From: Paramoeba atlantica
Lineage: Eukaryota; Protista; Discosea
Length of the DNA: 64,000 bases
NCBI GenBank assembly: GCA_977017575.1
Contig: CDRNVI010000054.1
Span: 726,496-790,495 of the forward strand
Reading direction: 5' to 3'
In this document: positions 1,013 to 29,290 of the stretch, piece by piece
Position numbering within the stretch: position 1 is the first letter of the stretch
Layout: each line of letters starts with the position of its first letter
Notes under the pieces: model-generated
The model's database searches: none
What the model was told of the DNA's origin: nothing
The model's input: the letters and a program-made list of their open reading frames with translations, nothing else
Translations under genes and position numbers: made by a program

Positions 1013-3330
1013 TCAGCTCCCAGCCACCAACGGGTGAGAGCGCGAAACTCGGTCGACGTGAAGGCATAACCCCTCCCCTTTGAAGGTACGACCAACCCCC
1101 TCACCCGTTTCGGAGAGCCATCTGGCGCGTGTATGGGGGTCGGCAGAGAGGTACGCCACCTTGTATTCCCGAGCTAAGATTGCTCGGGAGAGTGCTTGCT
1201 GCCTCGCTGTCGGGGGCTTTTCTTCCGGCATGTTCTCGGGTTTTGGGCTGGGAAGCGGGACGGGATCTGTTAGTGGGCGTGGTGGGAGCGTCACTGTAGG
1301 GCAACTGGACGGGTGAGAGGAGGAGCCTTTGGAGATAGAAAAAGTTTCCGGGGTATACTGATACCGCCCTGACAATTCGTCAATGAAGAGGGTACCAGAG
1401 AGCTCGTTTACATGGCGTGCCGCCTCGGAAAAGCCTGCAGCATGCGCCGCGTTCCACTCGTCGCACGATGCTGCAAAAGCTACGGATGACACGTACGCTG
1501 CGGCAGCGTGCATGAAGGAGGATAGCAGACCGAGGCCGCCGTACTTTTTGCTGCGCTGAGCCTGCATGCGTGACGAGGGGGTAAGCGAATTGATGGCCCT
1601 CTGCTCTGGGACTGCTTCTAGGCCTAGCGTTTTAGAGAGTTCTAAGATTACCTGAGGAGGGGTAGTGCGCATGGCGAATACGAGTTGACAGAAACCAGAG
1701 CATTGTCAGATTAGTGTCAACGCGACTTGCGGGTCTTCGATTCTCTTTATTGCCCGCATTGTAGATATCGCGGGGAGTAACGCATTCGTGTCCTGAAAAG
1801 CGCTGCAGTGATTTGCCGAACCAATCGGGCTTCCTAATAGATCAAAATTACCATTAATGTTTATCTTGTCTGGGGGAATGTCTGCGAAAAGAGCAGCGTT
1901 GTGCGCTGAGGCGGGGTGGAGGGCTACCTCACATTTTTGTTTGGTAAGGAGAAGACCAAGTTGTGTCCCCTCGCTAGAGGGGACTGCCAAGGGCCTTCCG
2001 GACTGATGCCTGGCTACCCGCTAAGTCCCCGTCATCAAGGTACCAGAACTGAAAGAAAGTGTCCTCTGGGAGTTCTGAAACGATTTTTTCCGTAATTAAG
2101 TGAAGAACGAGAGAGAAGAGCAGATGTCCGAGCGGGCCCCCTTGCTGTACGCCTTCTGCTGAGAGAACGGGGTGTGGGCCGTAGGTGAGTGAGCTGTCTG
2201 TCTCATAACACCACGAAATCCAGTCCGATAATTCTGGGAAATTTTCGCGTGTCAGGGAAATGAGAACGGATCGAGAAACGTTGTTAAACGCGTTGGCCAG
2301 ATCGACTTTACAGAAGACGAAGTCTGGGTCGTCAATGTGGGCGGAGAACGTCTGTCAGCAACGGTGTATCATCCGTTCCGACCCTGCAGGAACCGCGAAG
2401 CCGTATTGTGTTCCGCAAAAGATGGCTTGCGCTCGCAGTTTGAGTGCTGCACATGCTCCTTTGCTCGCTAGGCGACGAAGAGTTTCACCGACAGCAATCG
2501 GGCGGACGTCTTGCTCTCCTTTCTGCAAGGCGCAGAGGCGGGCGCCTGCGAAATGGTTTTGGGATTCGAGCGGAGCTTTCCCCGCCAAGAGATGGTTGAC
2601 TAACTTTGCGAGGGCCGTGAGTGGGTTGACATTCGAGTCGACGTTCGCGTAGAATGCCTCCTGTATGTGTTCTGGGCACAACCCCATCGTGCCTCCCGAG
2701 GAGCCTCTGTGGAAGCTTTTGACTGCGGCAGAAGTTTCTTGTTCCGTGAGCTGCAATGGCGGGCACTTTGTTGGGGGTGGTTCGGTGGCGAGGAATTCTG
2801 TCAAAAAGGCGGGGCAGGGCAGCCGACAAGGGTGTTTATTTCGAAGTTTTGAGAGGGTTTCTGGGCTTTCGGGCGCCATCGGAGAGGCCGTAAGGGCTGC
2901 CATACCCCGAGAAAATTCGCCTTGTCGTGCGAGGAGCTCTGTACGAATGGCTGCTCGCTTCTCGTCGTTGTGAGGGGTTTTCGGAGAACTATGTTGCTTG
3001 TTATTGAAGGAGGAAATTGCATCATACCATAGGGAAGCGTACTCGCGCGCTTGCCAACGCTCTAGGCACTTGAGAACGTGGTTGGCGTACGAAGTGTGCC
3101 CTTTGCGGCCCCCACGATAAGGGGCATGGAGGACGAACTTCGGGAGCATCGCTAGGAGGGTCCAAGCGCAAGTAGTGTTTTCCTTCCCCGCCGCAGCCAT
3201 CGCCTCGGAGAGAGCCGACGCCCAAAGTTGACGGCATCGGTATTGGATTTGTTTGCATGTCGAAATTGGGATGGCACATACGATAGGTAAGGGCGGCAGA
3301 GGTGGGTCGTTGTTTCACACTACCCCCGAG
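1013..3330 (-). pseudogene. Reverse transcriptase and thumb region of element A (disrupted)
   Basis: The 281-aa ORF 2355-3200 continues in frame past TGA into KVDLANAFN...QQGGPLG...WYLDDG. There is a frameshift near 1990 and a TGA at 1706-1708, followed by QCSGFCQLVFAMRTTPP. Confidence 0.92.
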
Positions 3331-3674
3331 AGATTAAGGGGTAGAACTGGAGTTGAGCTGGGCGACTGGGAGGGGTCAGTGGGGTGAGGGGAGGCGTGAT
3401 TTCGGAATTTACACTCTCAAGGTGTGAGATCTGTTTTGAAATATCGTAATTTTTTCTACATGGCCTGCAGAGGAAGCGACCTTGTTCACCCCACCACTGT
3501 GCGGAAACCGCGTCACCGTGTCGTGATTATAGAAGGCCTGCCAATGCCCTCCATGGGACGTTGTACTCCAAGTGCATCCTTCCGCTGGAAAAACACGAGA
3601 TTCTGTGGGCATGAAGAGGGGAAGTGTGATTTCGGAGAGATTATTGGAATGGAGAAGACGCGATCGTCGTGCAG

Positions 3675-4050
3675 GGTGGAGGTGGCGGAGTAGCAAGAAC
3701 TCAAAGTTTGAAGCACATGGTGCTCAAACGGCGAGTTCAAACCCGCTCATCGCAATTTTCCTGGCGGCCTCACTCTAAGAGGCTGGGCTGATACCCGACT
3801 AGGCCCAGTACTCGGATGACCGTCCCCTCAGTGAACCAGCTCCCTTACCCGGCTTACACCTCTTGGGTAAGCCGTGTTGACGTGCTGTTCGTTGACGCAG
3901 CGTGTTGGAAACAGCACGTTGGTGTCGCCTTGGACAAGCGGAAACTGGTAGAGGACGTCGGCCTCGGAACTTCCAAATCTGTCTGTGAAGGGTCTGGCTT
4001 GCCAGTGACCATCCGGAGCAATCCGGAATGATTTGGATTTTTTTGGATTG
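3675..4050 (+). mobile_element. tRNA-derived SINE nested in element A (copy 1)
   Basis: A-box TGGCGGAGT(A/G)GC, B-box GAGTTCAAACC, 3' hairpin TCCGGA-GCAA-TCCGGA and a GGATTT/T-rich tail. Flanked by GATCGTYGTGCAG (3662-3674 and 4051-4063). Confidence 0.85.
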
Positions 4051-5908
4051 GATCGTTGTGCAGAGTGCGGGGTATCGGGTCCCGGATTCTGTTCCACTCC
4101 GCCTCGCACAAGTTCGTTTTTTACGCTCGCTTGGGTCCACCCTGTGCTGGCCTCTAGCTCTATGGCAGGCGAGGTGAGGTTTTGCAATACGCGGGGGGGG
4201 CCTCGGTTCCACTCCAATCCCCCTCGTAAAAGACCGATATCTACCTGGGTCTTGCTCCACCCTGAGTTCGCTATAAACTTCTCGCTGGGCGTGAAACAAC
4301 AGAGCGGTCCTGAGGGGGAGGGCACTTCGCACCACGCAGGGGCGAATTCTGGGTCGATACCTAAATGTGAACATATAGCAACCGATAATTTGTTAGTAGG
4401 CACGCTGGAGGGGACAGTGATCTGCGTCTCACCTGTCGGGTATCCGTAAATGAGGACTCTGTTTTTTGACGGCTTTGCGGCGTTATAAGGTACCCGAAGA
4501 GCAGTGCCTAAAGTAACTAGGGGCGATATGTTGCTGAGCTTCTCGGTTAGATCCATAGTGGCCCCGGTTGCTGAAGCAACGAGTGTCACGAGCTCACTGC
4601 GGAGCCCCAAACAGAGCGCGATCTTGTCTCTAACTGAATCCAGATGGGCGTGAGACGGAACAACTGGGAAGGTGAGATTTTCCCAAGGCGATGGGCAAAG
4701 AAGGAGACGAATTGTAACGTCGACGGTGCTGTCTTCATCTAGATCTTCATCCCAGCCGGGCTGATCCAGTCCTCCAATTCAGTTTCCTTCATGTTTCTCT
4801 CGGCCTTTTGCATAAAAGGCGAGTTAGCAGACGGCGTTCTTGAGAGGGCTTGAAGTTCCCGGTGGAAGGTCTCTTACTTTCTCTACAATCTCGGAGCTTT
4901 CCTCTAACAGGATACTTCTTTTGGCGTCCATAGCTTTGCGAAACGCAACCTTGATGTCGTGTTCAAGGTGTACTTTCTTGTGCTCACTCAGTTGGTCGGC
5001 ATCCATCAGTTGCTTTGAACAGGTGTTGCAAACGTGTCCCTTCTTCTCTGTAATGGAGAGCTTTCGGGCAAGAGCGAGATGCCACTCGCGTCTTGCGTTA
5101 AGGTTTTCGAGAAAGAGATTGTGTCTGGAGACGAGCTCCTGGGCGACTAATTGAACGAATGAGAGATCTTTTTCTGTTGAACGGATCTCGTACTCTATGT
5201 CCGCTATGAAACCGTTTTCAGGCTTCTCTTTAGAGTGGAATGTGATTCTTTATTTAGCTTCTCAAACAGGGAAAAGCGTTCCTCCAATGAAAGAATGTGT
5301 TTCGTCTTCCCCGTAGTGGTTTCGCTTTCGTTAGAGGAGAAGGGGAAGTTACTGCGCGTTACTCCCTTTAGTGCTTGGACGAATGTTTTCTTCGGCCGTT
5401 CGGTGTGTGAAGCGAAGTAAGTTGCAGTTCTGGCAGGAGGGCGTGAGGGGAGCTCTGAAGTTCCCATAAATCGGGGAGGCTTCGAGGACGGAGTTCCGGT
5501 GTGATCCCGTGGGGCATGAGGGGATTCGAAGTCGCACGCATCACAGCGATTGAAATAGGGACGTTTAGGGCTGAAAGGGGATGAACACACTTCGCAGGGT
5601 TTGGTGAGACCCTGGGAAGTGTTTGAACAAGACAGTGCGCAGGACTCACACCACCGAAAGTAAGGCCTAGCGGGAAAGAACGGGGAGGAGCAAGCATCAC
5701 ATGATTTTTGGTGAGTGCTGTGTGGGCTTGGAGGGTTCGTCGCCGCGCGTGGCTGGACGGAAGGGTACGAGCGAATGGTGGGATGTAATGGGGGTTGTGA
5801 GAAATTGGGCGAGCATTTCGCGCAAAATCGGTGGGCGCGGTTATGTGGGACAAAACGTGTGCCACAGTGGCAAAACCAGAACTTCCCACCTGATCGAGGG
5901 TCATTCAT
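3828..5908 (-). pseudogene. N-terminal part of the element A polyprotein (zinc ribbons, C2H2, Ubl-like region, 2A-like motifs), frameshifted
   Basis: ORF 5204-5908, then a -1 frame encoding CNTCSKQLMDADQLSEHKKVH, then ORF 3828-4610. This copy has an additional private 1-nt deletion near 4757. Confidence 0.75.
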
Positions 5909-6199
5909 CGAGGGTCATTCATATGTAAAGTCAATAGGAATGGAAAGAGAAATAATTCAACAAGGCACAGAAACTGCATCTTTATCGTTGTTTTTTTTTT
6001 TGCAATAAATGGGGGGGGAGAAGTATAAAACGCGGCATTGCCTCTATATTTTTACCCAGAGACGAACCAAGTAGGTCCATTGGGGGGGGTATATGATTGA
6101 ACAAGCAATCAAATTGGCAATTTCACATGTTGTAGCCCAAAACTATTAATTCAACCTGCCTTAAGTTATTTATGATTTTGATAACAATAATAATAAAAA

Positions 6200-7220
6200 G
6201 AAGCAATTCATTCCCAATCCATTCGCTCGTTCCGGACCGGGTCTTTCGACCACTCCTCGGCCTGACTTGTGAACCCTTCCCTTGTTATATGGGAAGGTTT
6301 TTTTATTTTAACTTCACAGCTTTAGCAACAACAACAACAACTTACTTCCACACTTTACGCGCCCTTTCATGCGCAACGAAAGACGCAGGTTTTCTGCGGG
6401 CATCCGGAGTACCAACATGTGCGCTTGGGCTCGCATAAGGGTCACGTTCACTTCCGTGAGGAGGCGTTGGAAGGCCTTTCCACGCGAAAGTGTGCCCTTC
6501 GAGGCAGCTGAGCGGCGCTCGGCAACTTCTCGGAGAATTCCCCGCGCGCTCTCCGACCAGGGCCCGAAGGATTCCACCGCCATCCCGGTGAATCTATACC
6601 CTTGGGGTTCGGCCTCGAGGCGCTCCGAACGTTTGTGTTCCGTATCGTACCGTTCGACAAAGGATCCTGCGTTTCCCACACGTTAGCGCCTCGGACTGAG
6701 TCCGTATATGTATGTGGGTTGCTGAACGTGAGTTACGCAGAAGTCCAATACCAAACCGGTAGCTAGGCCAAAGTTTGGGAGGAAGACATGGCCCGGTCTG
6801 GTGGGGCCGCCGCCCGGGCCGTGGTTGCCTAGACCGACCTCTCGTTGCGGGGCGAGGTGTGCCTTGGCGCACACATCGCAGAAGTGCTCGACCAGGGCGT
6901 TGTGCCGGGAGATGAGGCCGTAGACGCTTTTTCATGCTAGGGCATGCTGGCCATCAGATCCTAGCGGTTGTTTACACTGGTCTCTAGGGCAAGGGCGGGG
7001 GGTGTCTTAGACGTCTGCCCCGAGCCACCAGCGTGCCAGGGTGCGGAACTCCGTAGGGGTAAGGGCGTACCCCAGCTCTCTGGATGGGAGGACAAAGGAC
7101 CAGCTTCCGACCCCTTCCCCGCTTTGAGAGAGCCATCTCGCTCTCTTTTCTTTTTGGCTCGTGTATCACATGTAGTCGGATCTTTTGCTTTCGGACAAGA
7201 ACCTGGTATCTCTCTCTTCC
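6200..7220 (-). mobile_element. 3' fragment of related CRE-like element B (unit 1)
   Basis: ARWLSQSGEG, RWWLGADV, CPRDQC, RHNAL, RPGHVFLP, DFCVT and VESFGPW, interrupted by stops. Clearly diverged from element A. Confidence 0.88.
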
Positions 7221-9111
7221 TTTCGTGTCCTGAAAAGCGCTGCAGTGATTTGCCGAACCAATCGGGCTTCCTAATAGATCAAAATTACCATTAATGTTTA
7301 TCTTGTCTGGGGGAATGTCTGCGAAAAGAGCAGCGTTGTGCGCTGAGGCGGGGTGGAGGGCTACCTCACATTTTTGTTTGGTAAGGAGAAGACCAAGTTG
7401 TGTCCCCTCGCTAGAGGGGACTGCCAAGGGCCTTCCGGACTGATGCCTGGCTACCCGCTAAGTCCCCGTCATCAAGGTACCAGAACTGAAAGAAAGTGTC
7501 CTCTGGGAGTTCTGAAACGATTTTTTCCGTAATTAAGTGAAGAACGAGAGAGAAGAGCAGATGTCCGAGCGGGCCCCCTTGCTGTACGCCTTCTGCTGAG
7601 AGAACGGTGTGTGGGCCGTAGGTGAGTGAGCTGTCTGTCTCATAACACCACGAAATCCAGTCCGATAATTCTGGGAAATTTTCGCGTGTCAGGGAAATGA
7701 GAACGGATCGAGAAACGTTGTTAAACGCGTTGGCCAGATCGACTTTACAGAAGACGAAGTCTGGGTCGTCAATGTGGGCGGAGAACGTCTGTCAGCAACG
7801 GCGTATCATCCGTTCCGACCCTGCAGGAACCGCGAAGCCGTATTGTGTTCCGCAAAAGATGGCTTGCGCTCGCAGTTTGAGTGCTGCACATGCTCCTTTG
7901 CTCGCTAGGCGACGAAGAGTTTCACCGACAGCAATCGGGCGGACGTCTTGCTCTCCTTTCTGCAAGGCGCAGAGGCGGGCGCCTGCGAAATGGTTTTGGG
8001 ATTCGAGCGGAGCTTTCCCCGCCAAGAAATGGTTGACTAACTTTGCGAGGGCCGTGAGTGGGTTGACATTCGAGTCGACGTTCGCGTAGAATGCCTCCTG
8101 TATGTGTTCTGGGCACAACCCCATCGTGCCTCCCGAGGAGCCTCTGTGGAAGCTTTTGACTGCGGCAGAAGTTTCTTGTTCCGTGAGCTGCAATGGCGGG
8201 CACTTTGTTGGGGGTGGTTCGGTGGCGAGGAATTCTGTCAAAAAGGCGGGGCAGGGCAGTCGACAAGGGTGTTTATTTCGAAGTTTTGAGAGGGTTTCTG
8301 GGCTTTCGGGCGCCATCGGAGAGGCCGTAAGGGCTGCCATACCCCGAGAAAATTCGCCTTGTCGTGCGAGGAGCTCTGTACGAATGGCTGCTCGCTTCTC
8401 GTCGTTGTGAGGGGTTTTCGGAGAACTATGTTGCTTGTTATTGAAGGAGGAAATTGCATCATACCATAGGGAAGCGTACTCGCGCGCTTGCCAACGCTCT
8501 AGGCACTTGAGAACGTGGTTGGCGTACGAAGTGTGCCCTTTGCGGCCCCCACGATAAGGGGCATGGAGGACGAACTTCGGGAGCATCGCTAGGAGGGTCC
8601 AAGCGCAAGTAGTGTTTTCCTTCCCCGCCGCAGCCATCGCCTCGGAGAGAGCCGACGCCCAAAGTTGACGGCATCGGTATTGGATTTGTTTGCATGTCGA
8701 AATTGGGATGGCACATACGATAGGTAAGGGCGGCAGAGGTGGGTCGTTGTTTCACACTACCCCCGAGAGATTAAGGGGTAGAACTGGAGTTGAGCTGGGC
8801 GACTGGGAGGGGTCAGTGGGGTGAGGGGAGGCGTGATTTCGGAATTTACACTCTCAAGGTGTGAGGTCTGCTTTGAAATATCGTAATTTTTTCTACATGG
8901 CCTGCAGAGGAAGCGACCTTGTTCACCCCACCACTGTGCGGAAACCGCGTCACCGTGTCGTGATTATAGAAGGCCTGCCAATGCCCTCCATGGGACGTTG
9001 TACTCCAAGTGCATCCTTCCGCTGGACAAACACGAGATTCTGTGGGCATGAAGAGGGGAAGTGTGATTTCGGAGAGATTATTGGAATGGAGAAGACGCGA
9101 TCGTCGTGCAG

Positions 9112-9487
9112 GGTGGAGGTGGCGGAGTGGCAAGAACTCAAAGTTTGAAGCACATGGTGCTCAAACGGCGAGTTCAAACCCGCTCATCGCAATATTCCTG
9201 GCGGCCTCACTCTAAGAGGCTGGGCTGATACCCGACTAGGCCCAGTACTCGGATGACCGTCCCCTCAGGGAACCAGCTCCCTTACCCGGCTTACACCTCT
9301 TGGGTAAGCCGTGTTGACGTGCTGTTCGTTGACGCAGCGTGTTGGAAACAGCACGTTGGTGTCGCCTTGGACAAGCGGAAACTGGTAGAGGACGTCGGCC
9401 TCGGAACTTCCAAATCTGTCTGTGAAGGGTCTGGCTCGCCAGTGACCATCCGGAGCAATCCGGAATGATTTGGATTTTTTTGGATTG
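9112..9487 (+). mobile_element. tRNA-derived SINE (copy 2)
   Basis: Same structure as copy 1, with an intact A-box TGGCGGAGTGG. TSD at 9099-9111 and 9488-9500. Confidence 0.85.
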
Positions 9488-10251
9488 GATCGTTGTGCAG
9501 AGTGCGGGGTATCGGGTCCCGGATTCTGTTCCACTCCGCCTCGCACAAGTTCGTTTTTTACGCTCGCTTGGGTCCACCCGGTGCTGGCCTCTAGCTCTAT
9601 GGCAGGCGAGGTGAGGTTTTGCAATACGCGGGGGGGGCCTCGGTTCCACTCCAATCCCCCTCGTAAAAGACCGATATCTACCTGGGTCTTGCTCCACCCT
9701 GAGTTCGCTATAAACTTCTCGCTGGGCGTGAAACAACAGAGCGGTCCTGAGGGGGAGGGCACTTCGCACCACGCAGGGGCGAATTCTGGGTCGATACCTA
9801 AATGTGAACATATAGCAACCGATAATTTGTTAGTAGGCACGCTGGAGGGGACAGTGATCTGCGTCTCACCTGTCGGGTATCCGTAAATGAGGACTCTGTT
9901 TTTTGACGGCTTTGCGGCGTTATAAGGTACCCGAAGAGCAGTGCCTAAAGTAACTAGGGGCGATATGTTGCTGAGCTTCTCGGTTAGATCCATAGTGGCC
10001 CCGGTTGCTGAAGCAACGAGTGTCACGAGCTCACTGCGGAGCCCCAAACAGAGCGCGATCTTGTCTCTAACTGAATCCAGATGGGCGTGAGACGGAACAA
10101 CTGGGAAGGTGAGATTTTCCCAAGGCGATGGGCAAAGAAGGAGACGAATTGTAACGTCGACGGTGCTGTCTTCATCTAGATCTTCATCCCAGCCCGGGCT
10201 GATCCAGTCCTCCAATTCAGTTTCCTTCATGTTTCTCTCGGCCTTTTGCAT
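9265..10251 (-). CDS. 328-aa ORF fragment of element A with a Ubl-like region and 2A-like motifs; it runs into the antisense SINE
   Basis: LLRGGLEWNRGP and ELVRGGVEQNPGP. Near-identical ORFs at 14703-15689, 20141-21127 and 25579-26565. Confidence 0.6.
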   Translation of the reverse strand: MQKAERNMKETELEDWISPGWDEDLDEDSTVDVTIRLLLCPSPWENLTFPVVPSHAHLDSVRDKIALCLGLRSELVTLVASATGATMDLTEKLSNISPLVTLGTALRVPYNAAKPSKNRVLIYGYPTGETQITVPSSVPTNKLSVAICSHLGIDPEFAPAWCEVPSPSGPLCCFTPSEKFIANSGWSKTQVDIGLLRGGLEWNRGPPRVLQNLTSPAIELEASTGWTQASVKNELVRGGVEQNPGPDTPHSAQRSNPKKSKSFRIAPDGHWRARPFTDRFGSSEADVLYQFPLVQGDTNVLFPTRCVNEQHVNTAYPRGVSRVRELVP

Positions 10252-10641
10252 AAAAGGCGAGTTAGCAGACGGCGTTCTTGAGAGGGCTTGAAGTTCCCGG
10301 TGGAAGGTCTCTTACTTTCTCTACAATCTCGGAGCTTTCCTCTAACAGGATACTTCTTTTGGCGTCCATAGCTTTGCGAAACGCAACCTTGATGTCGTGT
10401 TCAAGGCGTACTTTCTTGTGCTCACTCAGTTGGTCGGCATCCATCAGTTGCTTTGAACAGGTGTTGCAAACGTGTCCCTTCTTCTCTGTAATGGAGAGCT
10501 TTCGGGCAAGAGCGAGATGCCACTCGCGTCTTGCGTTAAGGTTTTCGAGAAAGAGATTGTGTCTGGAGACGAGCTCCTGGGCGACTAATTGAACGAATGA
10601 GAGATCTTTTTCTGTTGAACGGATCTCGTACTCTATGTCCG

Positions 10642-11346
10642 CTATGAAACCGTTTTCAGGCTTCTCTTTAGAGTGGAATGTGATTCTTTATTTAGCTTCT
10701 CAAACAGGGAAAAGCGTTCCTCCAATGAAAGAATGTGTTTCGTCTTCCCCGTAGTGGTTTCGCTTTCGTTAGAGGAGAAGGGGAAGTTACTGCGCGTTAC
10801 TCCCTTTAGTGCTTGGACGAATGTTTTCTTCGGCCGTTCGGTGTGTGAAGCGAAGTAAGTTGCAGTTCTGGCAGGAGGGCGTGAGGGGAGCTCTGAAGTT
10901 CCCATAAATCGGGGAGGCTTCGAGGACGGAGTTCCGGTGTGATCTCGTGGGGCATGAGGGGATTCGAAGTCGCACGCATCACAGCGATTGAAATAGGGAC
11001 GTTTAGGGCTGAAAGGGGATGAACACACTTCGCAGGGTTTGGTGAGACCCTGGGAAGTGTTTGAACAAGACAGTGCGAAGGACTCACACCACCGAAAGTA
11101 AGGCCTAGCGGGAAAGAACGGGGAGGAGCAAGCATCACATGATTTTTGGTGAGTGCTGTGTGGGCTTGGAGGGTTCGTCGCCGCGCGTGGCTGGACGGAA
11201 GGGTACGAGCGAATGGTGGGATGTAATGGGGGTTGTGAGAAATTGGGCGAGCATTTCGCGCAAAATCGGTGGGCGCGGTTATGTGGGACAAAACGTGTGC
11301 CACAGTGGCAAAACCAGAACTTCCCACCTGATCGAGGGTCATTCAT
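10642..11346 (-). CDS. 234-aa N-terminal ORF fragment with three CxxC-x(~12)-CxxC type zinc-ribbon repeats
   Basis: CHCGTRFVPHNRAHRFCAKC, CDACSSPFFPARPYFRWCES(C/F), CEVCSSPFSPKRPYFNRCDAC. Copies at 5204, 16080, 21518 and 26956. Confidence 0.6.
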   Translation of the reverse strand: MNDPRSGGKFWFCHCGTRFVPHNRAHRFCAKCSPNFSQPPLHPTIRSYPSVQPRAATNPPSPHSTHQKSCDACSSPFFPARPYFRWCESFALSCSNTSQGLTKPCEVCSSPFSPKRPYFNRCDACDFESPHAPRDHTGTPSSKPPRFMGTSELPSRPPARTATYFASHTERPKKTFVQALKGVTRSNFPFSSNESETTTGKTKHILSLEERFSLFEKLNKESHSTLKRSLKTVS

Positions 11347-11637
11347 CGAGGGTCATTCATATGTAAAGTCAATAGGAAGGGAAAGAGAAATAATTCAACA
11401 AGGCACAGAAACTGCATCTTTATCGTTGTTTTTTTTTTTGCAATAAATGGGGGGGGAGAAGTATAAAACGCGGCATTGCCTCTATATTTTTACCCAGAGA
11501 CGAACCAAGTAGGTCCATTGGGGGGGGTATATGATTGAACAAGCAATCAAATTGGCAATTTCACATGTTGTAGCCCAAAACTATTAATTCAACCTGCCTT
11601 AAGTTATTTATGATTTTGATAACAATAATAATAAAAA

Positions 11638-12658
11638 GAAGCAATTCATTCCCAATCCATTCGCTCGTTCCGGACCGGGTCTTTCGACCACTCCTCGGCC
11701 TGACTTGTGAACCCTTCCCTTGTTATATGGGAAGGTTTTTTTATTTTAACTTCACAGCTTTAGCAACAACAACAACAACTTACTTCCACACTTTACGCGC
11801 CCTTTCATGCGCAACGAAAGACGCAGGTTTTCTGCGGGCATCCGGAGTACCAACATGTGCGCTTGGGCTCGCATAAGGGTCACGTTCACTTCCGTGAGGA
11901 GGCGTTGGAAGGCCTTTCCACGCGAAAGTGTGCCCTTCGAGGCAGCTGAGCGGCGCTCGGCAACTTCTCGGAGAATTCCCCGCGCGCTCTCCGACCAGGG
12001 CCCGAAGGATTCCACCGCCACCCCGGTGAATCTATACCCTTGGGGTTCGGCCTCGAGGCGCTCCGAACGTTTGTGTTCCGTATCGTACCGTTCGACAAAG
12101 GATCCTGCGTTTCCCACACGTTAGCGCCTCGGACTGAGTCCGTATATGTATGTGGGTTGCTGAACGTGAGTTACGCAGAAGTCCAATACCAAACCGGTAG
12201 CTAGGCCAAAGTTTGGGAGGAAGACATGGCCCGGTCTGGTGGGGCCGCCGCCCGGGCCGTGGTTGCCTAGACCGACCTCTCGTTGCGGGGCGAGGTGTGC
12301 CTTGGCGCACACATCGCAGAAGTGCTCGACCAGGGCGTTGTGCCGGGAGATGAGGCCGTAGACGCTTTTTCATGCTAGGGCATTCTGGCCATCAGATCCT
12401 AGCGGTTGTTTACACTGGTCTCTAGGGCAAGGGCGGGGGGTGTCTTAGACGTCTGCCCCGAGCCACCAGCGTGCCAGGGTGCGGAACTCCGTAGGGGTAA
12501 GGGCGTACCCCAGCTCTCTGGATGGGAGGACAAAGGACCAGCTTCCGACCCCTTCCCCGCTTTGAGAGAGCCATCTCGCTCTCTTTTCTTTTTGGCTCGT
12601 GTATCACATGTAGTCGGATCTTTTGCTTTCGGACAAGAACCTGGTATCTCTCTCTTCC
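11638..12658 (-). mobile_element. Element B 3' fragment (unit 2)
   Basis: Near-identical to 6200-7220. Confidence 0.88.
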
Positions 12659-14549
12659 TTTCGTGTCCTGAAAAGCGCTGCAGTGATTTGCCGAACCAAT
12701 CGGGCTTCCTAATAGATCAAAATTACCATTAATGTTTATCTTGTCTGGGGGAATGTCTGCGAAAAGAGCAGCGTTGTGCGCTGAGGCGGGGTGGAGGGCT
12801 ACCTCACATTTTTGTTTGGTAAGGAGAAGACCAAGTTGTGTCCCCTCGCTAGAGGGGACTGCCAAGGGCCTTCCGGACTGATGCCTGGCTACCCGCTAAG
12901 TCCCCGTCATCAAGGTACCAGAACTGAAAGAAAGTGTCCTCTGGGAGTTCTGAAACGATTTTTTCCGTAATTAAGTGAAGAACGAGAGAGAAGAGCAGAT
13001 GTCCGAGCGGGCCCCCTTGCTGTACGCCTTCTGCTGAGAGAACGGTGTGTGGGCCGTAGGTGAGTGAGCTGTCTGTCTCATAACACCACGAAATCCAGTC
13101 CGATAATTCTGGGAAATTTTCGCGTGCCAGGGAAATGAGAACGGATCGAGAAACGTTGTTAAACGCGTTGGCCAGATCGACTTTACAGAAGACGAAGTCT
13201 GGGTCGTCAATGTGGGCGGAGAACGTCTGTCAGCAACGGTGTATCATCCGTTCCGACCCTGCAGGAACCGCGAAGCCGTATTGTGTTCCGCAAAAGATGG
13301 CTTGCGCTCGCAGTTTGAGTGCTGCACATGCTCCTTTGCTCGCTAGGCGACGAAGAGTTTCACCGACAGCAATCGGGCGGACGTCTTGCTCTCCTTTCTG
13401 CAAGGCGCAGAGGCGGGCGCCTGCGAAATGGTTTTGGGATTCGAGCGGAGCTTTCCCCGCCAAGAGATGGTTGACTAACTTTGCGAGGGCCGTGAGTGGG
13501 TTGACATTCGAGTCGACGTTCGCGTAGAATGCCTCCTGTATGTGTTCTGGGCACAACCCCATCGTGCCTCCCGAGGAGCCTCTGTGGAAGCTTTTGACTG
13601 CGGCAGAAGTTTCTTGTTCCGTGAGCTGCAATGGCGGGCACTTTGTTGGGGGTGGTTCGGTGGCGAGGAATTCTGTCAAAAAGGCGGGGCAGGGCAGTCG
13701 ACAAGGGTGTTTATTTCGAAGTTTTGAGAGGGTTTCTGGGCTTTCGGGCGCCATCGGAGAGGCCGTAAGGGCTGCCATACCCCGAGAAAATTCGCCTTGT
13801 CGTGCGAGGGGCTCTGTACGAATGGCTGCTCGCTTCTCGTCGTTGTGAGAGGTTTTCGGAGAACTATGTTGCTTGTTATTGAAGGAGGAAATTGCATCAT
13901 ACCATAGGGAAGCGTACTCGCGCGCTTGCCAACGCTCTAGGCACTTGAGAACGTGGTTGGCGTACGAAGTGTGCCCTTTGCGGCCCCCACGATAAGGGGC
14001 ATGGAGGACGAACTTCGGGAGCATCGCTAGGAGGGTCCAAGCGCAAGTAGTGTTTTCCTTCCCCGCCGCAGCCATCGCCTCGGAGAGAGCCGACGCCCAA
14101 AGTTGACGGCATCGGTATTGGATTTGTTTGCATGTCGAAATTGGGATGGCACATACGATAGGTAAGGGCGGCAGAGGTGGGTCGTTGTTTCACACTACCC
14201 CCGAGAGATTAAGGGGTAGAACTGGAGTTGAGCTGGGCGACTGGGAGGGGTCAGTGGGGTGAGGGGAGGCGTGATTTCGGAATTTACACTCTCAAGGTGT
14301 GAGGTCTGCTTTGAAATATCGTAATTTTTTCTACATGGCCTGCAGAGGAAGCGACCTTGTTCACCCCACCACTGTGCGGAAACCGCGTCACCGTGTCGTG
14401 ATTATAGAAGGCCTGCCAATGCCCTCCATGGGACGTTGTACTCCAAGTGCATCCTTCCGCTGGACAAACACGAGATTCTGTGGGCATGAAGAGGGGAAGT
14501 GTGATTTCGGAGAGATTATTGGAATGGAGAAGACGCGATCGTCGTGCAG

Positions 14550-14925
14550 GGTGGAGGTGGCGGAGTGGCAAGAACTCAAAGTTTGAAGCACATGGTGCTC
14601 AAACGGCGAGTTCAAACCCGCTCATCGCAATATTCCTGGCGGCCTCACTCTAAGAGGCTGGGCTGATACCCGACTAGGCCCAGTACTCGGATGACCGTCC
14701 CCTCAGGGAACCAGCTCCCTTACCCGGCTTACACCTCTTGGGTAAGCCGTGTTGACGTGCTGTTCGTTGACGCAGCGTGTTGGAAACAGCACGTTGGTGT
14801 CGCCTTGGACAAGCGGAAACTGGTAGAGGACGTCGGCCTCGGAACTTCCAAATCTGTCTGTGAAGGGTCTGGCTCGCCAGTGACCATCCGGAGCAATCCG
14901 GAATGATTTGGATTTTTTTGGATTG
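14550..14925 (+). mobile_element. tRNA-derived SINE (copy 3)
   Basis: Same as copy 2. Confidence 0.85.
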
Positions 14926-17075
14926 GATCGTTGTGCAGAGTGCGGGGTATCGGGTCCCGGATTCTGTTCCACTCCGCCTCGCACAAGTTCGTTTTTTACG
15001 CTCGCTTGGGTCCACCCGGTGCTGGCCTCTAGCTCTATGGCAGGCGAGGTGAGGTTTTGCAATACGCGGGGGGGGCCTCGGTTCCACTCCAATCCCCCTC
15101 GTAAAAGACCGATATCTACCTGGGTCTTGCTCCACCCTGAGTTCGCTATAAACTTCTCGCTGGGCGTGAAACAACAGAGCGGTCCTGAGGGGGAGGGCAC
15201 TTCGCACCACGCAGGGGCGAATTCTGGGTCGATACCTAAATGTGAACATATAGCAACCGATAATTTGTTAGTAGGCACGCTGGAGGGGACAGTGATCTGC
15301 GTCTCACCTGTCGGGTATCCGTAAATGAGGACTCTGTTTTTTGACGGCTTTGCGGCGTTATAAGGTACCCGAAGAGCAGTGCCTAAAGTAACTAGGGGCG
15401 ATATGTTGCTGAGCTTCTCGGTTAGATCCATAGTGGCCCCGGTTGCTGAAGCAACGAGTGTCACGAGCTCACTGCGGAGCCCCAAACAGAGCGCGATCTT
15501 GTCTCTAACTGAATCCAGATGGGCGTGAGACGGAACAACTGGGAAGGTGAGATTTTCCCAAGGCGATGGGCAAAGAAGGAGACGAATTGTAACGTCGACG
15601 GTGCTGTCTTCATCTAGATCTTCATCCCAGCCCGGGCTGATCCAGTCCTCCAATTCAGTTTCCTTCATGTTTCTCTCGGCCTTTTGCATAAAAGGCGAGT
15701 TAGCAGACGGCGTTCTTGAGAGGGCTTGAAGTTCTCGGTGGAAGGTCTCTTACTTTCTCTACAATCTCGGAGCTTTCCTCTAACAGGATACTTCTTTTGG
15801 CGTCCATAGCTTTGCGAAACGCAACCTTGATGTCGTGTTCAAGGTGTACTTTCTTGTGCTCACTCAGTTGGTCGGCATCCATCAGTTGCTTTGAACAGGT
15901 GTTGCAAACGTGTCCCTTCTTCTCTGTAATGGAGAGCTTTCGGGCAAGAGCGAGATGCCACTCGCGTCTTGCGTTAAGGTTTTCGAGAAAGAGATTGTGT
16001 CTGGAGACGAGCTCCTGGGCGACTAATTGAACGAATGAGAGATCTTTTTCTGTTGAACGGATCTCGTACTCTATGTCCGCTATGAAACCGTTTTCAGGCT
16101 TCTCTTTAGAGTGGAATGTGATTCTTTATTTAGCTTCTCAAACAGGGAAAAGCGTTCCTCCAATGAAAGAATGTGTTTCGTCTTCCCCGTAGTGGTTTCG
16201 CTTTCGTTAGAGGAGAAGGGGAAGTTACTGCGCGTTACTCCCTTTAGTGCTTGGACGAATGTTTTCTTCGGCCGTTCGGTGTGTGAAGCGAAGTAAGTTG
16301 CAGTTCTGGCAGGAGGGCGTGAGGGGAGCTCTGAAGTTCCCATAAATCGGGGAGGCTTCGAGGACGGAGTTCCGGTGTGATCTCGTGGGGCATGAGGGGA
16401 TTCGAAGTCGCACGCATCACAGCGATTGAAATAGGGACGTTTAGGGCTGAAAGGGGATGAACACACTTCGCAGGGTTTGGTGAGACCCTGGGAAGTGTTT
16501 GAACAAGACAGTGCGAAGGACTCACACCACCGAAAGTAAGGCCTAGCGGGAAAGAACGGGGAGGAGCAAGCATCACATGATTTTTGGTGAGTGCTGTGTG
16601 GGCTTGGAGGGTTCGTCGCCGCGCGTGGCTGGACGGAAGGGTACGAGCGAATGGTGGGATGTAATGGGGGTTGTGAGAAATTGGGCGAGCATTTCGCGCA
16701 AAATCGGTGGGCGCGGTTATGTGGGACAAAACGTGTGCCACAGTGGCAAAACCAGAACTTCCCACCTGATCGAGGGTCATTCATCGAGGGTCATTCATAT
16801 GTAAAGTCAATAGGAAGGGAAAGAGAAATAATTCAACAAGGCACAGAAACTGCATCTTTATCGTTGTTTTTTTTTTTGCAATAAATGGGGGGGGAGAAGT
16901 ATAAAACGCGGCATTGCCTCTATATTTTTACCCAGAGACGAACCAAGTAGGTCCATTGGGGGGGGTATATGATTGAACAAGCAATCAAATTGGCAATTTC
17001 ACATGTTGTAGCCCAAAACTATTAATTCAACCTGCCTTAAGTTATTTATGATTTTGATAACAATAATAATAAAAA

Positions 17076-18096
17076 GAAGCAATTCATTCCCAATCCATTC
17101 GCTCGTTCCGGACCGGGTCTTTCGACCACTCCTCGGCCTGACTTGTGAACCCTTCCCTTGTTATATGGGAAGGTTTTTTTATTTTAACTTCACAGCTTTA
17201 GCAACAACAACAACAACTTACTTCCACACTTTACGCGCCCTTTCATGCGCAACGAAAGACGCAGGTTTTCTGCGGGCATCCGGAGTACCAACATGTGCGC
17301 TTGGGCTCGCATAAGGGTCACGTTCACTTCCGTGAGGAGGCGTTGGAAGGCCTTTCCACGCGAAAGTGTGCCCTTCGAGGCAGCTGAGCGGCGCTCGGCA
17401 ACTTCTCGGAGAATTCCCCGCGCGCTCTCCGACCAGGGCCCGAAGGATTCCACCGCCACCCCGGTGAATCTATACCCTTGGGGTTCGGCCTCGAGGCGCT
17501 CCGAACGTTTGTGTTCCGTATCGTACCGTTCGACAAAGGATCCTGCGTTTCCCACACGTTAGCGCCTCGGACTGAGTCCGTATATGTATGTGGGTTGCTG
17601 AACGTGAGTTACGCAGAAGTCCAATACCAAACCGGTAGCTAGGCCAAAGTTTGGGAGGAAGACATGGCCCGGTCTGGTGGGGCCGCCGCCCGGGCCGTGG
17701 TTGCCTAGACCGACCTCTCGTTGCGGGGCGAGGTGTGCCTTGGCGCACACATCGCAGAAGTGCTCGACCAGGGCGTTGTGCCGGGAGATGAGGCCGTAGA
17801 CGCTTTTTCATGCTAGGGCATTCTGGCCATCAGATCCTAGCGGTTGTTTACACTGGTCTCTAGGGCAAGGGCGGGGGGTGTCTTAGACGTCTGCCCCGAG
17901 CCACCAGCGTGCCAGGGTGCGGAACTCCGTAGGGGTAAGGGCGTACCCCAGCTCTCTGGATGGGAGGACAAAGGACCAGCTTCCGACCCCTTCCCCGCTT
18001 TGAGAGAGCCATCTCGCTCTCTTTTCTTTTTGGCTCGTGTATCACATGTAGTCGGATCTTTTGCTTTCGGACAAGAACCTGGTATCTCTCTCTTCC
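17076..18096 (-). mobile_element. Element B 3' fragment (unit 3)
   Basis: Near-identical to 6200-7220. Confidence 0.88.
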
Positions 18097-19987
18097 TTTC
18101 GTGTCCTGAAAAGCGCTGCAGTGATTTGCCGAACCAATCGGGCTTCCTAATAGATCAAAATTACCATTAATGTTTATCTTGTCTGGGGGAATGTCTGCGA
18201 AAAGAGCAGCGTTGTGCGCTGAGGCGGGGTGGAGGGCTACCTCACATTTTTGTTTGGTAAGGAGAAGACCAAGTTGTGTCCCCTCGCTAGAGGGGACTGC
18301 CAAGGGCCTTCCGGACTGATGCCTGGCTACCCGCTAAGTCCCCGTCATCAAGGTACCAGAACTGAAAGAAAGTGTCCTCTGGGAGTTCTGAAACGATTTT
18401 TTCCGTAATTAAGTGAAGAACGAGAGAGAAGAGCAGATGTCCGAGCGGGCCCCCTTGCTGTACGCCTTCTGCTGAGAGAACGGTGTGTGGGCCGTAGGTG
18501 AGTGAGCTGTCTGTCTCATAACACCACGAAATCCAGTCCGATAATTCTGGGAAATTTTCGCGTGCCAGGGAAATGAGAACGGATCGAGAAACGTTGTTAA
18601 ACGCGTTGGCCAGATCGACTTTACAGAAGACGAAGTCTGGGTCGTCAATGTGGGCGGAGAACGTCTTTCAGCAACGGTGTATCATCCGTTCCGACCCTGC
18701 AGGAACCGCGAAGCCGTATTGTGTTCCGCAAAAGATGGCTTGCGCTCGCAGTTTGAGTGCTGCACATGCTCCTTTGCTCGCTAGGCGACGAAGAGTTTCA
18801 CCGACAGCAATCGGGCGGACGTCTTGCTCTCCTTTCTGCAAGGCGCAGAGGCGGGCGCCTGCGAAATGGTTTTGGGATTCGAGCGGAGCTTTCCCCGCCA
18901 AGAGATGGTTGACTAACTTTGCGAGGGCCGTGAGTGGGTTGACATTCGAGTCGACGTTCGCGTAGAATGCCTCCTGTATGTGTTCTGGGCACAACCCCAT
19001 CGTGCCTCCCGAGGAGCCTCTGTGGAAGCTTTTGACTGCGGCAGAAGTTTCTTGTTCCGTGAGCTGCAATGGCGGGCACTTTGTTGGGGGTGGTTCGGTG
19101 GCGAGGAATTCTGTCAAAAAGGCGGGGCAGGGCAGTCGACAAGGGTGTTTATTTCGAAGTTTTGAGAGGGTTTCTGGGCTTTCGGGCGCCATCGGAGAGG
19201 CCGTAAGGGCTGCCATACCCCGAGAAAATTCGCCTTGTCGTGCGAGGGGCTCTGTACGAATGGCTGCTCGCTTCTCGTCGTTGTGAGAGGTTTTCGGAGA
19301 ACTATGTTGCTTGTTATTGAAGGAGGAAATTGCATCATACCATAGGGAAGCGTACTCGCGCGCTTGCCAACGCTCTAGGCACTTGAGAACGTGGTTGGCG
19401 TACGAAGTGTGCCCTTTGCGGCCCCCACGATAAGGGGCATGGAGGACGAACTTCGGGAGCATCGCTAGGAGGGTCCAAGCGCAAGTAGTGTTTTCCTTCC
19501 CCGCCGCAGCCATCGCCTCGGAGAGAGCCGACGCCCAAAGTTGACGGCATCGGTATTGGATTTGTTTGCATGTCGAAATTGGGATGGCACATACGATAGG
19601 TAAGGGCGGCAGAGGTGGGTCGTTGTTTCACACTACCCCCGAGAGATTAAGGGGTAGAACTGGAGTTGAGCTGGGCGACTGGGAGGGGTCAGTGGGGTGA
19701 GGGGAGGCGTGATTTCGGAATTTACACTCTCAAGGTGTGAGGTCTGCTTTGAAATATCGTAATTTTTTCTACATGGCCTGCAGAGGAAGCGACCTTGTTC
19801 ACCCCACCACTGTGCGGAAACCGCGTCACCGTGTCGTGATTATAGAAGGCCTGCCAATGCCCTCCATGGGACGTTGTACTCCAAGTGCATCCTTCCGCTG
19901 GACAAACACGAGATTCTGTGGGCATGAAGAGGGGAAGTGTGATTTCGGAGAGATTATTGGAATGGAGAAGACGCGATCGTCGTGCAG

Positions 19988-20363
19988 GGTGGAGGTGGCG
20001 GAGTGGCAAGAACTCAAAGTTTGAAGCACATGGTGCTCAAACGGCGAGTTCAAACCCGCTCATCGCAATATTCCTGGCGGCCTCACTCTAAGAGGCTGGG
20101 CTGATACCCGACTAGGCCCAGTACTCGGATGACCGTCCCCTCAGGGAACCAGCTCCCTTACCCGGCTTACACCTCTTGGGTAAGCCGTGTTGACGTGCTG
20201 TTCGTTGACGCAGCGTGTTGGAAACAGCACGTTGGTGTCGCCTTGGACAAGCGGAAACTGGTAGAGGACGTCGGCCTCGGAACTTCCAAATCTGTCTGTG
20301 AAGGGTCTGGCTCGCCAGTGACCATCCGGAGCAATCCGGAATGATTTGGATTTTTTTGGATTG
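19988..20363 (+). mobile_element. tRNA-derived SINE (copy 4)
   Basis: Same as copy 2. Confidence 0.85.
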
Positions 20364-22513
20364 GATCGTTGTGCAGAGTGCGGGGTATCGGGTCCCGGAT
20401 TCTGTTCCACTCCGCCTCGCACAAGTTCGTTTTTTACGCTCGCTTGGGTCCACCCGGTGCTGGCCTCTAGCTCTATGGCAGGCGAGGTGAGGTTTTGCAA
20501 TACGCGGGGGGGGCCTCGGTTCCACTCCAATCCCCCTCGTAAAAGACCGATATCTACCTGGGTCTTGCTCCACCCTGAGTTCGCTATAAACTTCTCGCTG
20601 GGCGTGAAACAACAGAGCGGTCCTGAGGGGGAGGGCACTTCGCACCACGCAGGGGCGAATTCTGGGTCGATACCTAAATGTGAACATATAGCAACCGATA
20701 ATTTGTTAGTAGGCACGCTGGAGGGGACAGTGATCTGCGTCTCACCTGTCGGGTATCCGTAAATGAGGACTCTGTTTTTTGACGGCTTTGCGGCGTTATA
20801 AGGTACCCGAAGAGCAGTGCCTAAAGTAACTAGGGGCGATATGTTGCTGAGCTTCTCGGTTAGATCCATAGTGGCCCCGGTTGCTGAAGCAACGAGTGTC
20901 ACGAGCTCACTGCGGAGCCCCAAACAGAGCGCGATCTTGTCTCTAACTGAATCCAGATGGGCGTGAGACGGAACAACTGGGAAGGTGAGATTTTCCCAAG
21001 GCGATGGGCAAAGAAGGAGACGAATTGTAACGTCGACGGTGCTGTCTTCATCTAGATCTTCATCCCAGCCCGGGCTGATCCAGTCCTCCAATTCAGTTTC
21101 CTTCATGTTTCTCTCGGCCTTTTGCATAAAAGGCGAGTTAGCAGACGGCGTTCTTGAGAGGGCTTGAAGTTCCCGGTGGAAGGTCTCTTACTTTCTCTAC
21201 AATCTCGGAGCTTTCCTCTAACAGGATACTTCTTTTGGCGTCCATAGCTTTGCGAAACGCAACCTTGATGTCGTGTTCAAGGCGTACTTTCTTGTGCTCA
21301 CTCAGTTGGTCGGCATCCATCAGTTGCTTTGAACAGGTGTTGCAAACGTGTCCCTTCTTCTCTGTAATGGAGAGCTTTCGGGCAAGAGCGAGATGCCACT
21401 CGCGTCTTGCGTTAAGGTTTTCGAGAAAGAGATTGTGTCTGGAGACGAGCTCCTGGGCGACTAATTGAACGAATGAGAGATCTTTTTCTGTTGAACGGAT
21501 CTCGTACTCTATGTCCGCTATGAAACCGTTTTCAGGCTTCTCTTTAGAGTGGAATGTGATTCTTTATTTAGCTTCTCAAACAGGGAAAAGCGTTCCTCCA
21601 ATGAAAGAATGTGTTTCGTCTTCCCCGTAGTGGTTTCGCTTTCGTTAGAGGAGAAGGGGAAGTTACTGCGCGTTACTCCCTTTAGTGCTTGGACGAATGT
21701 TTTCTTCGGCCGTTCGGTGTGTGAAGCGAAGTAAGTTGCAGTTCTGGCAGGAGGGCGTGAGGGGAGCTCTGAAGTTCCCATAAATCGGGGAGGCTTCGAG
21801 GACGGAGTTCCGGTGTGATCTCGTGGGGCATGAGGGGATTCGAAGTCGCACGCATCACAGCGATTGAAATAGGGACGTTTAGGGCTGAAAGGGGATGAAC
21901 ACACTTCGCAGGGTTTGGTGAGACCCTGGGAAGTGTTTGAACAAGACAGTGCGAAGGACTCACACCACCGAAAGTAAGGCCTAGCGGGAAAGAACGGGGA
22001 GGAGCAAGCATCACATGATTTTTGGTGAGTGCTGTGTGGGCTTGGAGGGTTCGTCGCCGCGCGTGGCTGGACGGAAGGGTACGAGCGAATGGTGGGATGT
22101 AATGGGGGTTGTGAGAAATTGGGCGAGCATTTCGCGCAAAATCGGTGGGCGCGGTTATGTGGGACAAAACGTGTGCCACAGTGGCAAAACCAGAACTTCC
22201 CACCTGATCGAGGGTCATTCATCGAGGGTCATTCATATGTAAAGTCAATAGGAAGGGAAAGAGAAATAATTCAACAAGGCACAGAAACTGCATCTTTATC
22301 GTTGTTTTTTTTTTTGCAATAAATGGGGGGGGAGAAGTATAAAACGCGGAATTGCCTCTATATTTTTACCAAGAGACGAACCAAGTAGGTCCATTGGGGG
22401 GGGTATATGATTGAACAAGCAATCAAATTGGCAATTTCACATGTTGTAGCCCAAAACTATTAATTCAACCTGCCTTAAGTTATTTATGATTTTGATAACA
22501 ATAATAATAAAAA

Positions 22514-25425: not shown

Positions 25426-25801
25426 GGTGGAGGTGGCGGAGTGGCAAGAACTCAAAGTTTGAAGCACATGGTGCTCAAACGGCGAGTTCAAACCCGCTCA
25501 TCGCAATATTCCTGGCGGCCTCACTCTAAGAGGCTGGGCTGATACCCGACTAGGCCCAGTACTCGGATGACCGTCCCCTCAGGGAACCAGCTCCCTTACC
25601 CGGCTTACACCTCTTGGGTAAGCCGTGTTGACGTGCTGTTCGTTGACGCAGCGTGTTGGAAACAGCACGTTGGTGTCGCCTTGGACAAGCGGAAACTGGT
25701 AGAGGACGTCGGCCTCGGAACTTCCAAATCTGTCTGTGAAGGGTCTGGCTCGCCAGTGACCATCCGGAGCAATCCGGAATGATTTGGATTTTTTTGGATT
25801 G
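25426..25801 (+). mobile_element. tRNA-derived SINE (copy 5)
   Basis: Same as copy 2. Confidence 0.85.
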
Positions 25802-29230: not shown

Positions 29231-29240
29231 ATGTTATGGC

Positions 29241-29290
29241 AAAATCCAAATCCAAATCATTCCGGATTGCTCCGGATGGTCACTGGCACA
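29241..29290 (-). mobile_element. Isolated SINE-type 3' tail
   Basis: AAAATCCAAATCCAAATCATTCCGGATTGCTCCGGATGGTCACTGGC is the reverse complement of the SINE 3' end. Confidence 0.7.

Follow-up and report, generated by a model that had tools for sequence, protein, structure and literature searches.

A conserved, often tandem 2A-like module between ubiquitin-like domains and the reverse transcriptase in restriction-like endonuclease-type retrotransposons from a Paramoeba atlantica assembly

Can a retrotransposon with a restriction-like endonuclease (RLE) make two proteins out of one open reading frame (ORF) by ribosomal skipping? This question is raised by a stretch of 64,000 nucleotides from the assembly GCA_977017575.1 of Paramoeba atlantica (contig CDRNVI010000054.1, positions 726,496 to 790,495), which we call the window and to whose numbering the coordinates below refer. 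An earlier note on this DNA had placed two tandem 2A-like (StopGo) motifs at 9514-9669, just upstream of the reverse transcriptase (RT) of an RLE-type element, and had proposed that they split one polyprotein into ORF1-like and ORF2-like products. Both motifs are present as placed. They lie on the minus strand, whose translation from 9669 to 9634 reads LLRGGLEWNRGP and from 9552 to 9514 reads ELVRGGVEQNPGP with 27 residues in between, and their final prolines are 40 codons apart; the plus-strand reading of 9514-9669 was also tried and yielded no motif. Judging from the sequences of this element and its relatives we consider it likely that a StopGo site, often doubled, separates an ORF1-like protein with ubiquitin-like domains from the RT-endonuclease and that less of the latter is probably made as a result.

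The second module (9514..9582, minus strand), TGWTQASVKNELVRGGVEQNPGP, has the intact core GVEQNPGP. It fits the consensus (D/G/C/N)(V/I)ExNPGP to which the older form D(V/I)ExNPGP has since been widened (PMC12846837), is the same in the sister copies L006 and L007 and is conserved in L031, L008 and L009. The first module (9634..9702, minus strand), SGWSKTQVDIGLLRGGLEWNRGP, is set apart from the second by a spacer of 17 residues (9583..9633, minus strand) and has decayed, with V changed to L at p13 and P to R at p17. Its motif GLEWNRGP thus misses the core octapeptide, and L006, L007 and L031 have GVEWNPGP at this place. The earlier note had described this motif as one base away from NPGP (CGA versus CCA). 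That change is real, but a second residue differs too: the window has TTG (L) and CGA (R) where the 91%-identical copies L006 and L007 have GTG (V) and CCA (P). The letters of the first module agree in all three DNA runs, and no other letters were found between 9437 and 10407. If both sites were skipped, a peptide of 40 residues reaching from the last proline of the first site to the glycine of the second would be freed. The suspicion that G in place of the conserved D may reduce activity falls away because both G and C occur there in natural active sites: at p12 G is as frequent as D in RNA-virus data, and C is fully active (>95%; PMC12846837).

A chance origin of the motifs is excluded by their numbers. 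The DNA pattern encoding ExNPGP is found five times in the window, once per unit of the repeat described below, against 0.03 expected from shuffles. In the 45.7-Mb genome the pattern for GGVExNPGP has 20 matches, whereas the reversed control has 0 and the estimated chance expectation is ~0.09, and every mappable genomic match falls inside a copy of these elements.

Many related copies are present in the genome. In them the module, 23 residues long, reads (S/T)GW(S/T)x8-9 R-G-(G/C)-(V/I)-E-x-N-P-G-P and occurs in one to three copies per element. A search of related RLE elements for GxExNPGP at the same position, named in the earlier note as a check, shows the motif, with G or C as its first residue, conserved across at least five divergent families of this genome, in which the module is the best conserved stretch of the N-terminal region. 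We aligned 12 members over ~215 residues, 28-45% identical to the window except for the 92%-identical sister copy L007. Eleven positions are invariant and nine of these (G, W, L, R, G, E, N, G and P) fall in the module. When each family is represented by one row, 9 of the 23 columns in the module are invariant as compared with 5 of the 165 columns outside (Fisher p=1.7e-6). From family to family the module shows synonymous changes in its codons for R, G, E, N, P, G and P (AAC/AAT; CCA/CCG/CCC/CCT; GGC/GGA/GGT; CGA/CGG/CGT/AGA). Broken motifs were seen only in otherwise defective copies, namely NRGP in the window, NLGP in L010, NQDP in L042 and NPDP in L025, and also NPRP. Where the module is duplicated in tandem, the duplication took the 23 residues alone and not the whole domain.

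In relatives with long frames the module is read in one frame with the enzymatic part. L031 has an open frame of 1266 aa with a 1247-aa ORF from a TTG start, and its order is part of the first ubiquitin-like domain, the second ubiquitin-like domain, ...LMRGGVEWNPGP, a longer spacer, ...LFRGGVEQNPGP, a CCHH finger, RT, CCHC and RLE; the motifs of this family are 63 residues apart as against 40 in the window. L053, which belongs to a different family, carries a C2H2 finger, two ubiquitin-like domains, ...LIRGGIESNPGP and RT in one frame, which is at least 1078 aa long and runs off the locus, still open, at either end. The family L055-58 has three sites in a row, RGGIESNPGP, RGCIESNPGP and STIEENPGP, and the T at p12 of the third site is a rare variant reported to be active in viruses. 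RRGCIEANPGP is found in L059-68 and in several database proteins. A profile of the module matched 20 of 1.84 billion representative proteins; 19 apparently come from the same lineage with the same module variants, and the twentieth was rejected as a weak match to an unrelated bacterial repeat protein. The six clusters of matches that we looked up are known from ENA only. Word-index protein searches returned only the organism's own proteins, whose gene calls start downstream of the 2A and are therefore blind to the motif.

Some further observations on these relatives may be recorded here. The copies L055-L058 sit at C2:391k, C4:632k, C9:88k and C12:582k of genome G000 and have AT-hook-like KRGRPPG motifs after the sites. 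Among the longest 2A-bearing open frames are those at C12:830034 (1465 aa), C4:632036 and C19:20814. Related RLE elements without 2A or ubiquitin-like part also exist (L032 1847-2821, minus strand, P0002, P0009, P0015 and P0018), and this kind appears to account for most of the long intact ORFs in the genome. Their N-terminal stretch reads ..GSWDQF.GN..L....STYNE.LYT.., with a match to Pfam LsmAD (PF06741) in P0018. A 585-aa ORF at L032 7380-9137 (minus strand), with weak RVT_1 and RNase H-like (RVT_3) matches, adjoins a 2A-bearing copy and belongs to a different retroelement class.

The assignment to the RLE type made in the earlier note proved right. The RT is of the type lacking long terminal repeats (non-LTR), as seen from the RVT_1 match of L031 (E=3e-16) and from its best solved relatives by sequence, which are R2 proteins (E=1e-6). 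The C-terminal motifs CxxC...H....C...RH followed by RP(A/G)D-x17-D-x-(A/C)-V occur in the intact relative as well as in 12 of the 22 database homologues. The modelled C-terminal region of the intact relative (predicted template modelling score, pTM, 0.67) found R2 proteins as its best match (prob 1.00, E 3e-5 to 1e-4), followed by weak matches to other PD-(D/E)xK nucleases. Pfam scans of the long ORFs gave RVT_1 and zinc fingers only and no apurinic/apyrimidinic-type endonuclease (APE) domain. The motifs, the fold match to R2 and the missing APE domain together establish the type. A CRE-like label may be suggested by a single pointer, the spliced-leader-like stretch at the junction described below. 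Like the CRE-clade elements SLACS, CZAR and CRE1/2 of trypanosomatids (PMC12278014), the present ones have zinc finger(s), RT, a CCHC plus RLE tail, poly(A) and an apparent association with spliced-leader sequence. They differ in carrying both a 2A and ubiquitin-like domains, neither of which is mentioned for SLACS, CZAR and CRE1/2 in PMC12278014.

In the window copy the frame from the second motif into the ORF2-like part is interrupted by a nested short interspersed nuclear element (SINE), which lies ~20 nt after the second NPGP and is antisense to the element (9106..9494, plus strand, 389 bp including one copy of the target-site duplication). The SINE is present in more than 100 copies in the genome, and contig depth is very high over 9106-9494. 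Its head is called tRNA-like by eye only, because the tRNA (ARAGORN) and Rfam scans of the window were both blank. The target-site duplication of 11 bp, CTGCAC[A/G]ACGA, was found by alignment with the SINE-free copy L032. Several lines of evidence bear out that the second motif leads in frame into the zinc finger-RT-RLE region once the SINE is removed. The remainder of 389 divided by 3 is 2, which is exactly the offset of the 2A frame from the zinc-finger frame. L032 reads directly NPGP-DTPYSARRSLLLHSNNLS...CPADGCTW into the zinc finger. Moreover the public DNA runs X1 and X2 contain the SINE-free joint 9105->9495, the X1 contig being 3 of 2031 letters off the window. A SINE-free allele or further copy therefore exists, though all five assembled units have the SINE.

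Directly upstream of the first module are two ubiquitin-like (beta-grasp) domains (9703..10164, minus strand), recognised with AlphaFold2 and Foldseek. AlphaFold2 models the 217 residues up to and including the second motif with two beta-beta-alpha-beta-beta units and a predicted local distance difference test score (pLDDT) of 80-89 over residues 1-155. The best Foldseek matches are ISG15 and linear di-ubiquitin (both E 2e-6), together with FAT10 (prob 1.00 throughout). On the sequence level the Pfam ubiquitin profile PF00240 matched none of 12 members, and an hhalign comparison of the second domain with the organism's own ubiquitin found no similarity (prob 0.15%); the first domain gave a weak sequence match to a redesigned ubiquitin (E=0.023). 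In the model, pLDDT is <50 for the module and the segment before RGG is drawn as a helix. RGG is found in most families and RGC in some, with R and G invariant at p10 and p11. The span between the 'GID' loop behind the helix and the final G of RGG measures 48 residues, as compared with 42 between the GIPP loop and G76 in the organism's ubiquitin, and since these spans are comparable RGG would stand about where the tail of ubiquitin sits. The strand drawn just before the module is too near the third strand to be the fifth. By these residue counts, which give a hint, the balance of likelihood lies with KTQVDIGLL being that strand and RGG taking the place of ubiquitin's tail, and it is probably the ...LLRGG of the module itself that forms the end of the second domain. 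Two beta-grasp domains in tandem, with an RGG directly ahead of the site at which the chain is split, are likewise known from ISG15, linear di-ubiquitin and ubiquitin-fusion precursors, whereas here sequence homology is undetectable and the division is probably made by the ribosome and not by a protease. Two Pfam ubiquitin matches above cut-off, at C9:110996-111166 and C4:606563-606733 of G000, lie inside open frames of 573 and 635 aa, ~22-25 kb from three-site 2A copies on the same contigs; they may be element-encoded ubiquitin-like domains nearer to ubiquitin.

How such an element could work may be pictured as follows. Active members would have one long ORF in which an RNA-binding, ORF1-like part (CX2C knuckles, coiled coil, C2H2 finger and two ubiquitin-like domains) is followed by an ORF2-like part (CCHH finger, RT, CCHC knuckle and RLE nuclease), with the modules between both parts, and their host would be a protist using spliced leaders. 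With the module in the exit tunnel, the ribosome would fail to join glycine to proline. The upstream protein would be let go with an ...NPG end and translation would resume from the proline. One ORF would in this way give two proteins, and with some ribosomes dropping off, the front protein would be in excess over the enzyme; a second tandem site would catch read-through and add to the drop-off. We infer skipping, the stoichiometry and the role of the tandem arrangement from sequence, frame, conservation, architecture and folds. The proposal of a polyprotein split by skipping thus stands on the family level, where the frames of L031 and L053, the conservation of the module and its synonymous codons speak for it, with skipping itself predicted. 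For the window copy it does not stand: this copy is a fossil unable to perform such a split, with its first motif mutated, the SINE breaking the frame, a stop in the RT and a frameshifted ORF1-like part. The mutated first site, the SINE and the stop in the RT preceded the fivefold duplication of the locus as DNA.

Several points weigh against a skipping function and have to be set beside the evidence for it. The upstream context of the module fits neither described class of 2A. A Leu-rich tract as in class A is missing, and class B is defined by an invariant W at 16 from the C-terminal proline and EEG(I/V)E before (N/H)PGP in a register that is critical (PMC12338488; bioRxiv 10.64898/2026.09.24.754024). 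The present modules have an invariant W at position 21 and the stretch L.RG(G/C)(V/I)E, and because W is at 21 and not at 16 we regard their upstream context as different from class B. They share with class B and with viral StopGo having G or C at p12 (PMC12846837; PMC12338488) the core (G/C)(V/I)ExNPGP and an invariant upstream W at fixed spacing; they lack EEG(I/V)E, have the invariant R-G at p10 and p11 and reside in a cellular retrotransposon. A W at p15 is unusual as well. The families are mutually related, so the conservation statistics overstate their independence. Among the copies examined no complete uninterrupted full-length member of the window's own subfamily was seen, and run X5, the one possible RNA run, was empty for the element. 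Finally, a high-throughput screen with a heterologous reporter found that most retrotransposon 2A-like peptides lowered protein abundance and did not give clean skipping (bioRxiv 10.64898/2026.06.17.732966).

The last point leads to the rival that the module is a stalling or attenuating peptide, which mostly lowers the output of RT-endonuclease or of the whole protein without two stable products. In the screen, which covered eukaryotic 2A-like peptides, 59-70% of the tested ORF1p- or ORF2p-associated peptides fell into the 'reduction' class (bioRxiv 10.64898/2026.06.17.732966), and tandem sites would compound drop-off. However, the screen used a reporter system other than the native host, variants matched by the core show more than 90% skipping in reticulocyte lysate (PMC12846837), and two functional halves in one ORF need, or at least tolerate, separation; we therefore hold this explanation to be rather unlikely. 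It appears very improbable that the NPGP motifs serve as structure or linker, retained by descent and without a part in recoding. All copies are of one lineage and shared ancestry alone accounts for some of the conservation, but it would leave unexplained an eight-residue match to the StopGo core among families only 28% identical elsewhere, the synonymous variation of the codons, the repeated duplication of a short module and the confinement of motif decay to dead copies.

A rival of another kind is suggested by the folds upstream of the module. The site could be mainly one of ubiquitin-type processing, at which a deubiquitinase cuts after GG, either instead of StopGo or following it to trim VExNPG. 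The domains fold like ISG15 and di-ubiquitin, R and G are invariant at p10 and p11 with RGG in most families, LLRGG may be compared with the LRLRGG end of ubiquitin and ISG15, and the span of 48 against 42 residues puts RGG about at the ubiquitin tail. On the other hand one large family and several others have RGC and not RGG, the second module retains RGG without a ubiquitin-like fold before it, VExNPGP after GG is more conserved than a cleavage site requires, the segment before RGG is a low-confidence helix in the model and not a last strand, and there is no sequence similarity to ubiquitin. We consider this type of processing unlikely. A combination of the two ideas is rather doubtful: the upstream half of StopGo could double as the last ubiquitin-like strand with its LRGG tail, so that the ribosome would free an ISG15-like pair with a six-residue stub (VExNPG), which a deubiquitinase could trim to give a conjugatable or host-readable C-terminus. 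If true, this would connect translational recoding with ubiquitin-like modification in a new way and would suggest a route by which a 2A of the type G-G-(V/I)-E-x-NPGP could arise from a ubiquitin tail.

The separation of the two parts by StopGo, which we prefer, has precedents outside the RLE-type elements. Among retrotransposons, APE-type clades are those for which 2A sites have been documented (PMC3708506), and StopGo is functional in kinetoplastids, as known from L1Tc and from 2A vectors for T. cruzi (PMC3708506, PMC10830525). A 2026 preprint widens the retrotransposon 2A to many 'non-LTR-like' contigs, naming mostly APE-type elements (bioRxiv 10.64898/2026.06.17.732966); another preprint of that year likewise widens it to 'non-LTR-like' contigs, with the endonuclease type unnamed in the passages covered. 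The APE-type 2A elements (L1Tc and ingi from trypanosomes; Rex1, Crack, L2 and CR1 from animals; Odon et al. 2013, PMC3708506) resemble the present ones in having an in-frame ...ExNPGP upstream of the enzymatic part, in being thought to yield separate products and in having relatives free of the site. In contrast to their N-terminal APE the present elements have a C-terminal RLE, a large ORF1-like protein with two ubiquitin-like domains precedes the site, p12 is G or C and not D, the context is GW...L.RG and two or three sites occur together. RNA viruses (picornaviruses, dicistroviruses, totiviruses) are known to carry active 2As in tandem (PMC11512398; bioRxiv 10.64898/2026.09.24.754024). These, too, have two or more modules in a row before one coding region, made by local duplication; here the carrier is a retrotransposon and not an RNA virus, and the spacers have 17-40 residues where the viral modules are back-to-back. 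In our literature searches we found no paper on 2A in CRE, R2 or other RLE elements and none on 2A fused to or beside a ubiquitin-like domain, and searching with the exact module peptides returned nothing. As far as the literature found goes, 2A in RLE-type elements appears new and its direct fusion to a ubiquitin-like pair ending in RGG undescribed, whereas 2A in retrotransposons, tandem 2A and G or C at p12 were already known.

It remains to describe the locus itself. The segment holding the motifs is present in five tandem copies (1785..28972, minus strand) with a period of 5437-5438 bp and 99.6-99.8% identity as judged by self-BLAST. The other intact second modules, one per repeat copy, are at 4077-4145, 14952-15020, 20390-20458 and 25828-25896 (minus strand). 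The duplicated unit is not one element. It begins within the 3' part of an element, crosses its poly(A) and a spliced-leader-like 33-mer and takes in the 5' two-thirds of the element that follows. Five separate insertions were considered and rejected, as the units meet within the RT and each of them has the SINE and the stop; the same lesions are found in all five copies because one segment was duplicated as DNA. By the self-BLAST boundaries the junction of the tandem duplication (7220..7222) lies inside the RT, where ~165 residues of the thumb region are gone; the units meet at 7221/7222, at 12659/12660 and so on. In units 2-5 the tblastn match of the L031 protein leaps from aa 873 to aa 1039. 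Only the lowest copy goes on beyond 1785, where it has the RT part that the other units lack and reaches the RLE near 435; its RT-RLE is full-length but frameshifted. A contig of the independent run X2 stops exactly at 7222, as expected of a branch point. By eye the sequence upstream of 28972 resembles the RT region of an element. The end of another SINE copy was noticed at 29240-29300 (minus strand), immediately upstream of the array and at an apparent truncation of the upstream element, and outside the array there is a direct repeat pair of 470 bp (53357-53828 and 61524-61994, 97% identical).

The element that bears the motifs is read on the minus strand from a head-to-tail junction (11396..11439), where the upstream element closes with an 11-nt poly(A) and the present one is headed, at 11428-11396, by a spliced-leader-like stretch of 33 nt (core CAGTTTCTGT); the equivalent junction is at 5958-6000 (minus strand). 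The core is of the kinetoplastid type, and a pattern search found the variant ...CAGTTTCTGTACCTTGTTG at four other sites of the genome. The ORF1-like N-terminal part (10262..11346, minus strand) has three CX2C...CX2C knuckles, a coiled-coil-like stretch and a C2H2 finger and is split over three frames. L032 holds the same residues in a single ORF of 693 aa, and tblastn with this ORF revealed the frame changes of the window; in relatives this part gives weak C2H2, zf-met and jaz matches. An acidic stretch lies between the ORF1-like region and the ubiquitin-like domains. Beyond the modules and the SINE the ORF2-like part starts with a CCHH zinc finger (CPAEGCTW...H...H; 8960..9028, minus strand) in the ORF 8846-9133 (minus strand), which has a weak Pfam zinc-finger match and is conserved in L031, L032 and many long genomic ORFs. 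The RT follows (RPIAVGE...YLDDG; 7182..8718, minus strand) with the in-frame stop RRC*QTF and frameshifts, cut at the duplication junction; L031 ORF aa 366-873 match window 8718-7182 with 46-58% identity by tblastn. The CCHC knuckle and RLE at 6521..7159 (minus strand) are the 3' part of the neighbouring upstream element caught in the duplication and match L031 aa 1039-1249 at 68% identity (tblastn). Pfam searches of the window's own ORF pieces gave nothing beyond the one weak zinc-finger match because this copy is broken, and the RT was identified via intact relatives instead.

RLE-type elements are usually described as having a single ORF and making a single protein. The conserved and often tandem StopGo module suggests, from its sequence, that these early-branching site-specific elements may also make two proteins from one ORF, and it would offer them a simple means of setting the ratio of ORF1-like to ORF2-like protein. 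The catalogue of natural 2A peptides would also gain a distinct upstream context from this module, GW...L.RG(G/C) with the W at position 21, and this context may be useful for studies of the nascent chain in the exit tunnel and for 2A tools in kinetoplastid-like organisms.

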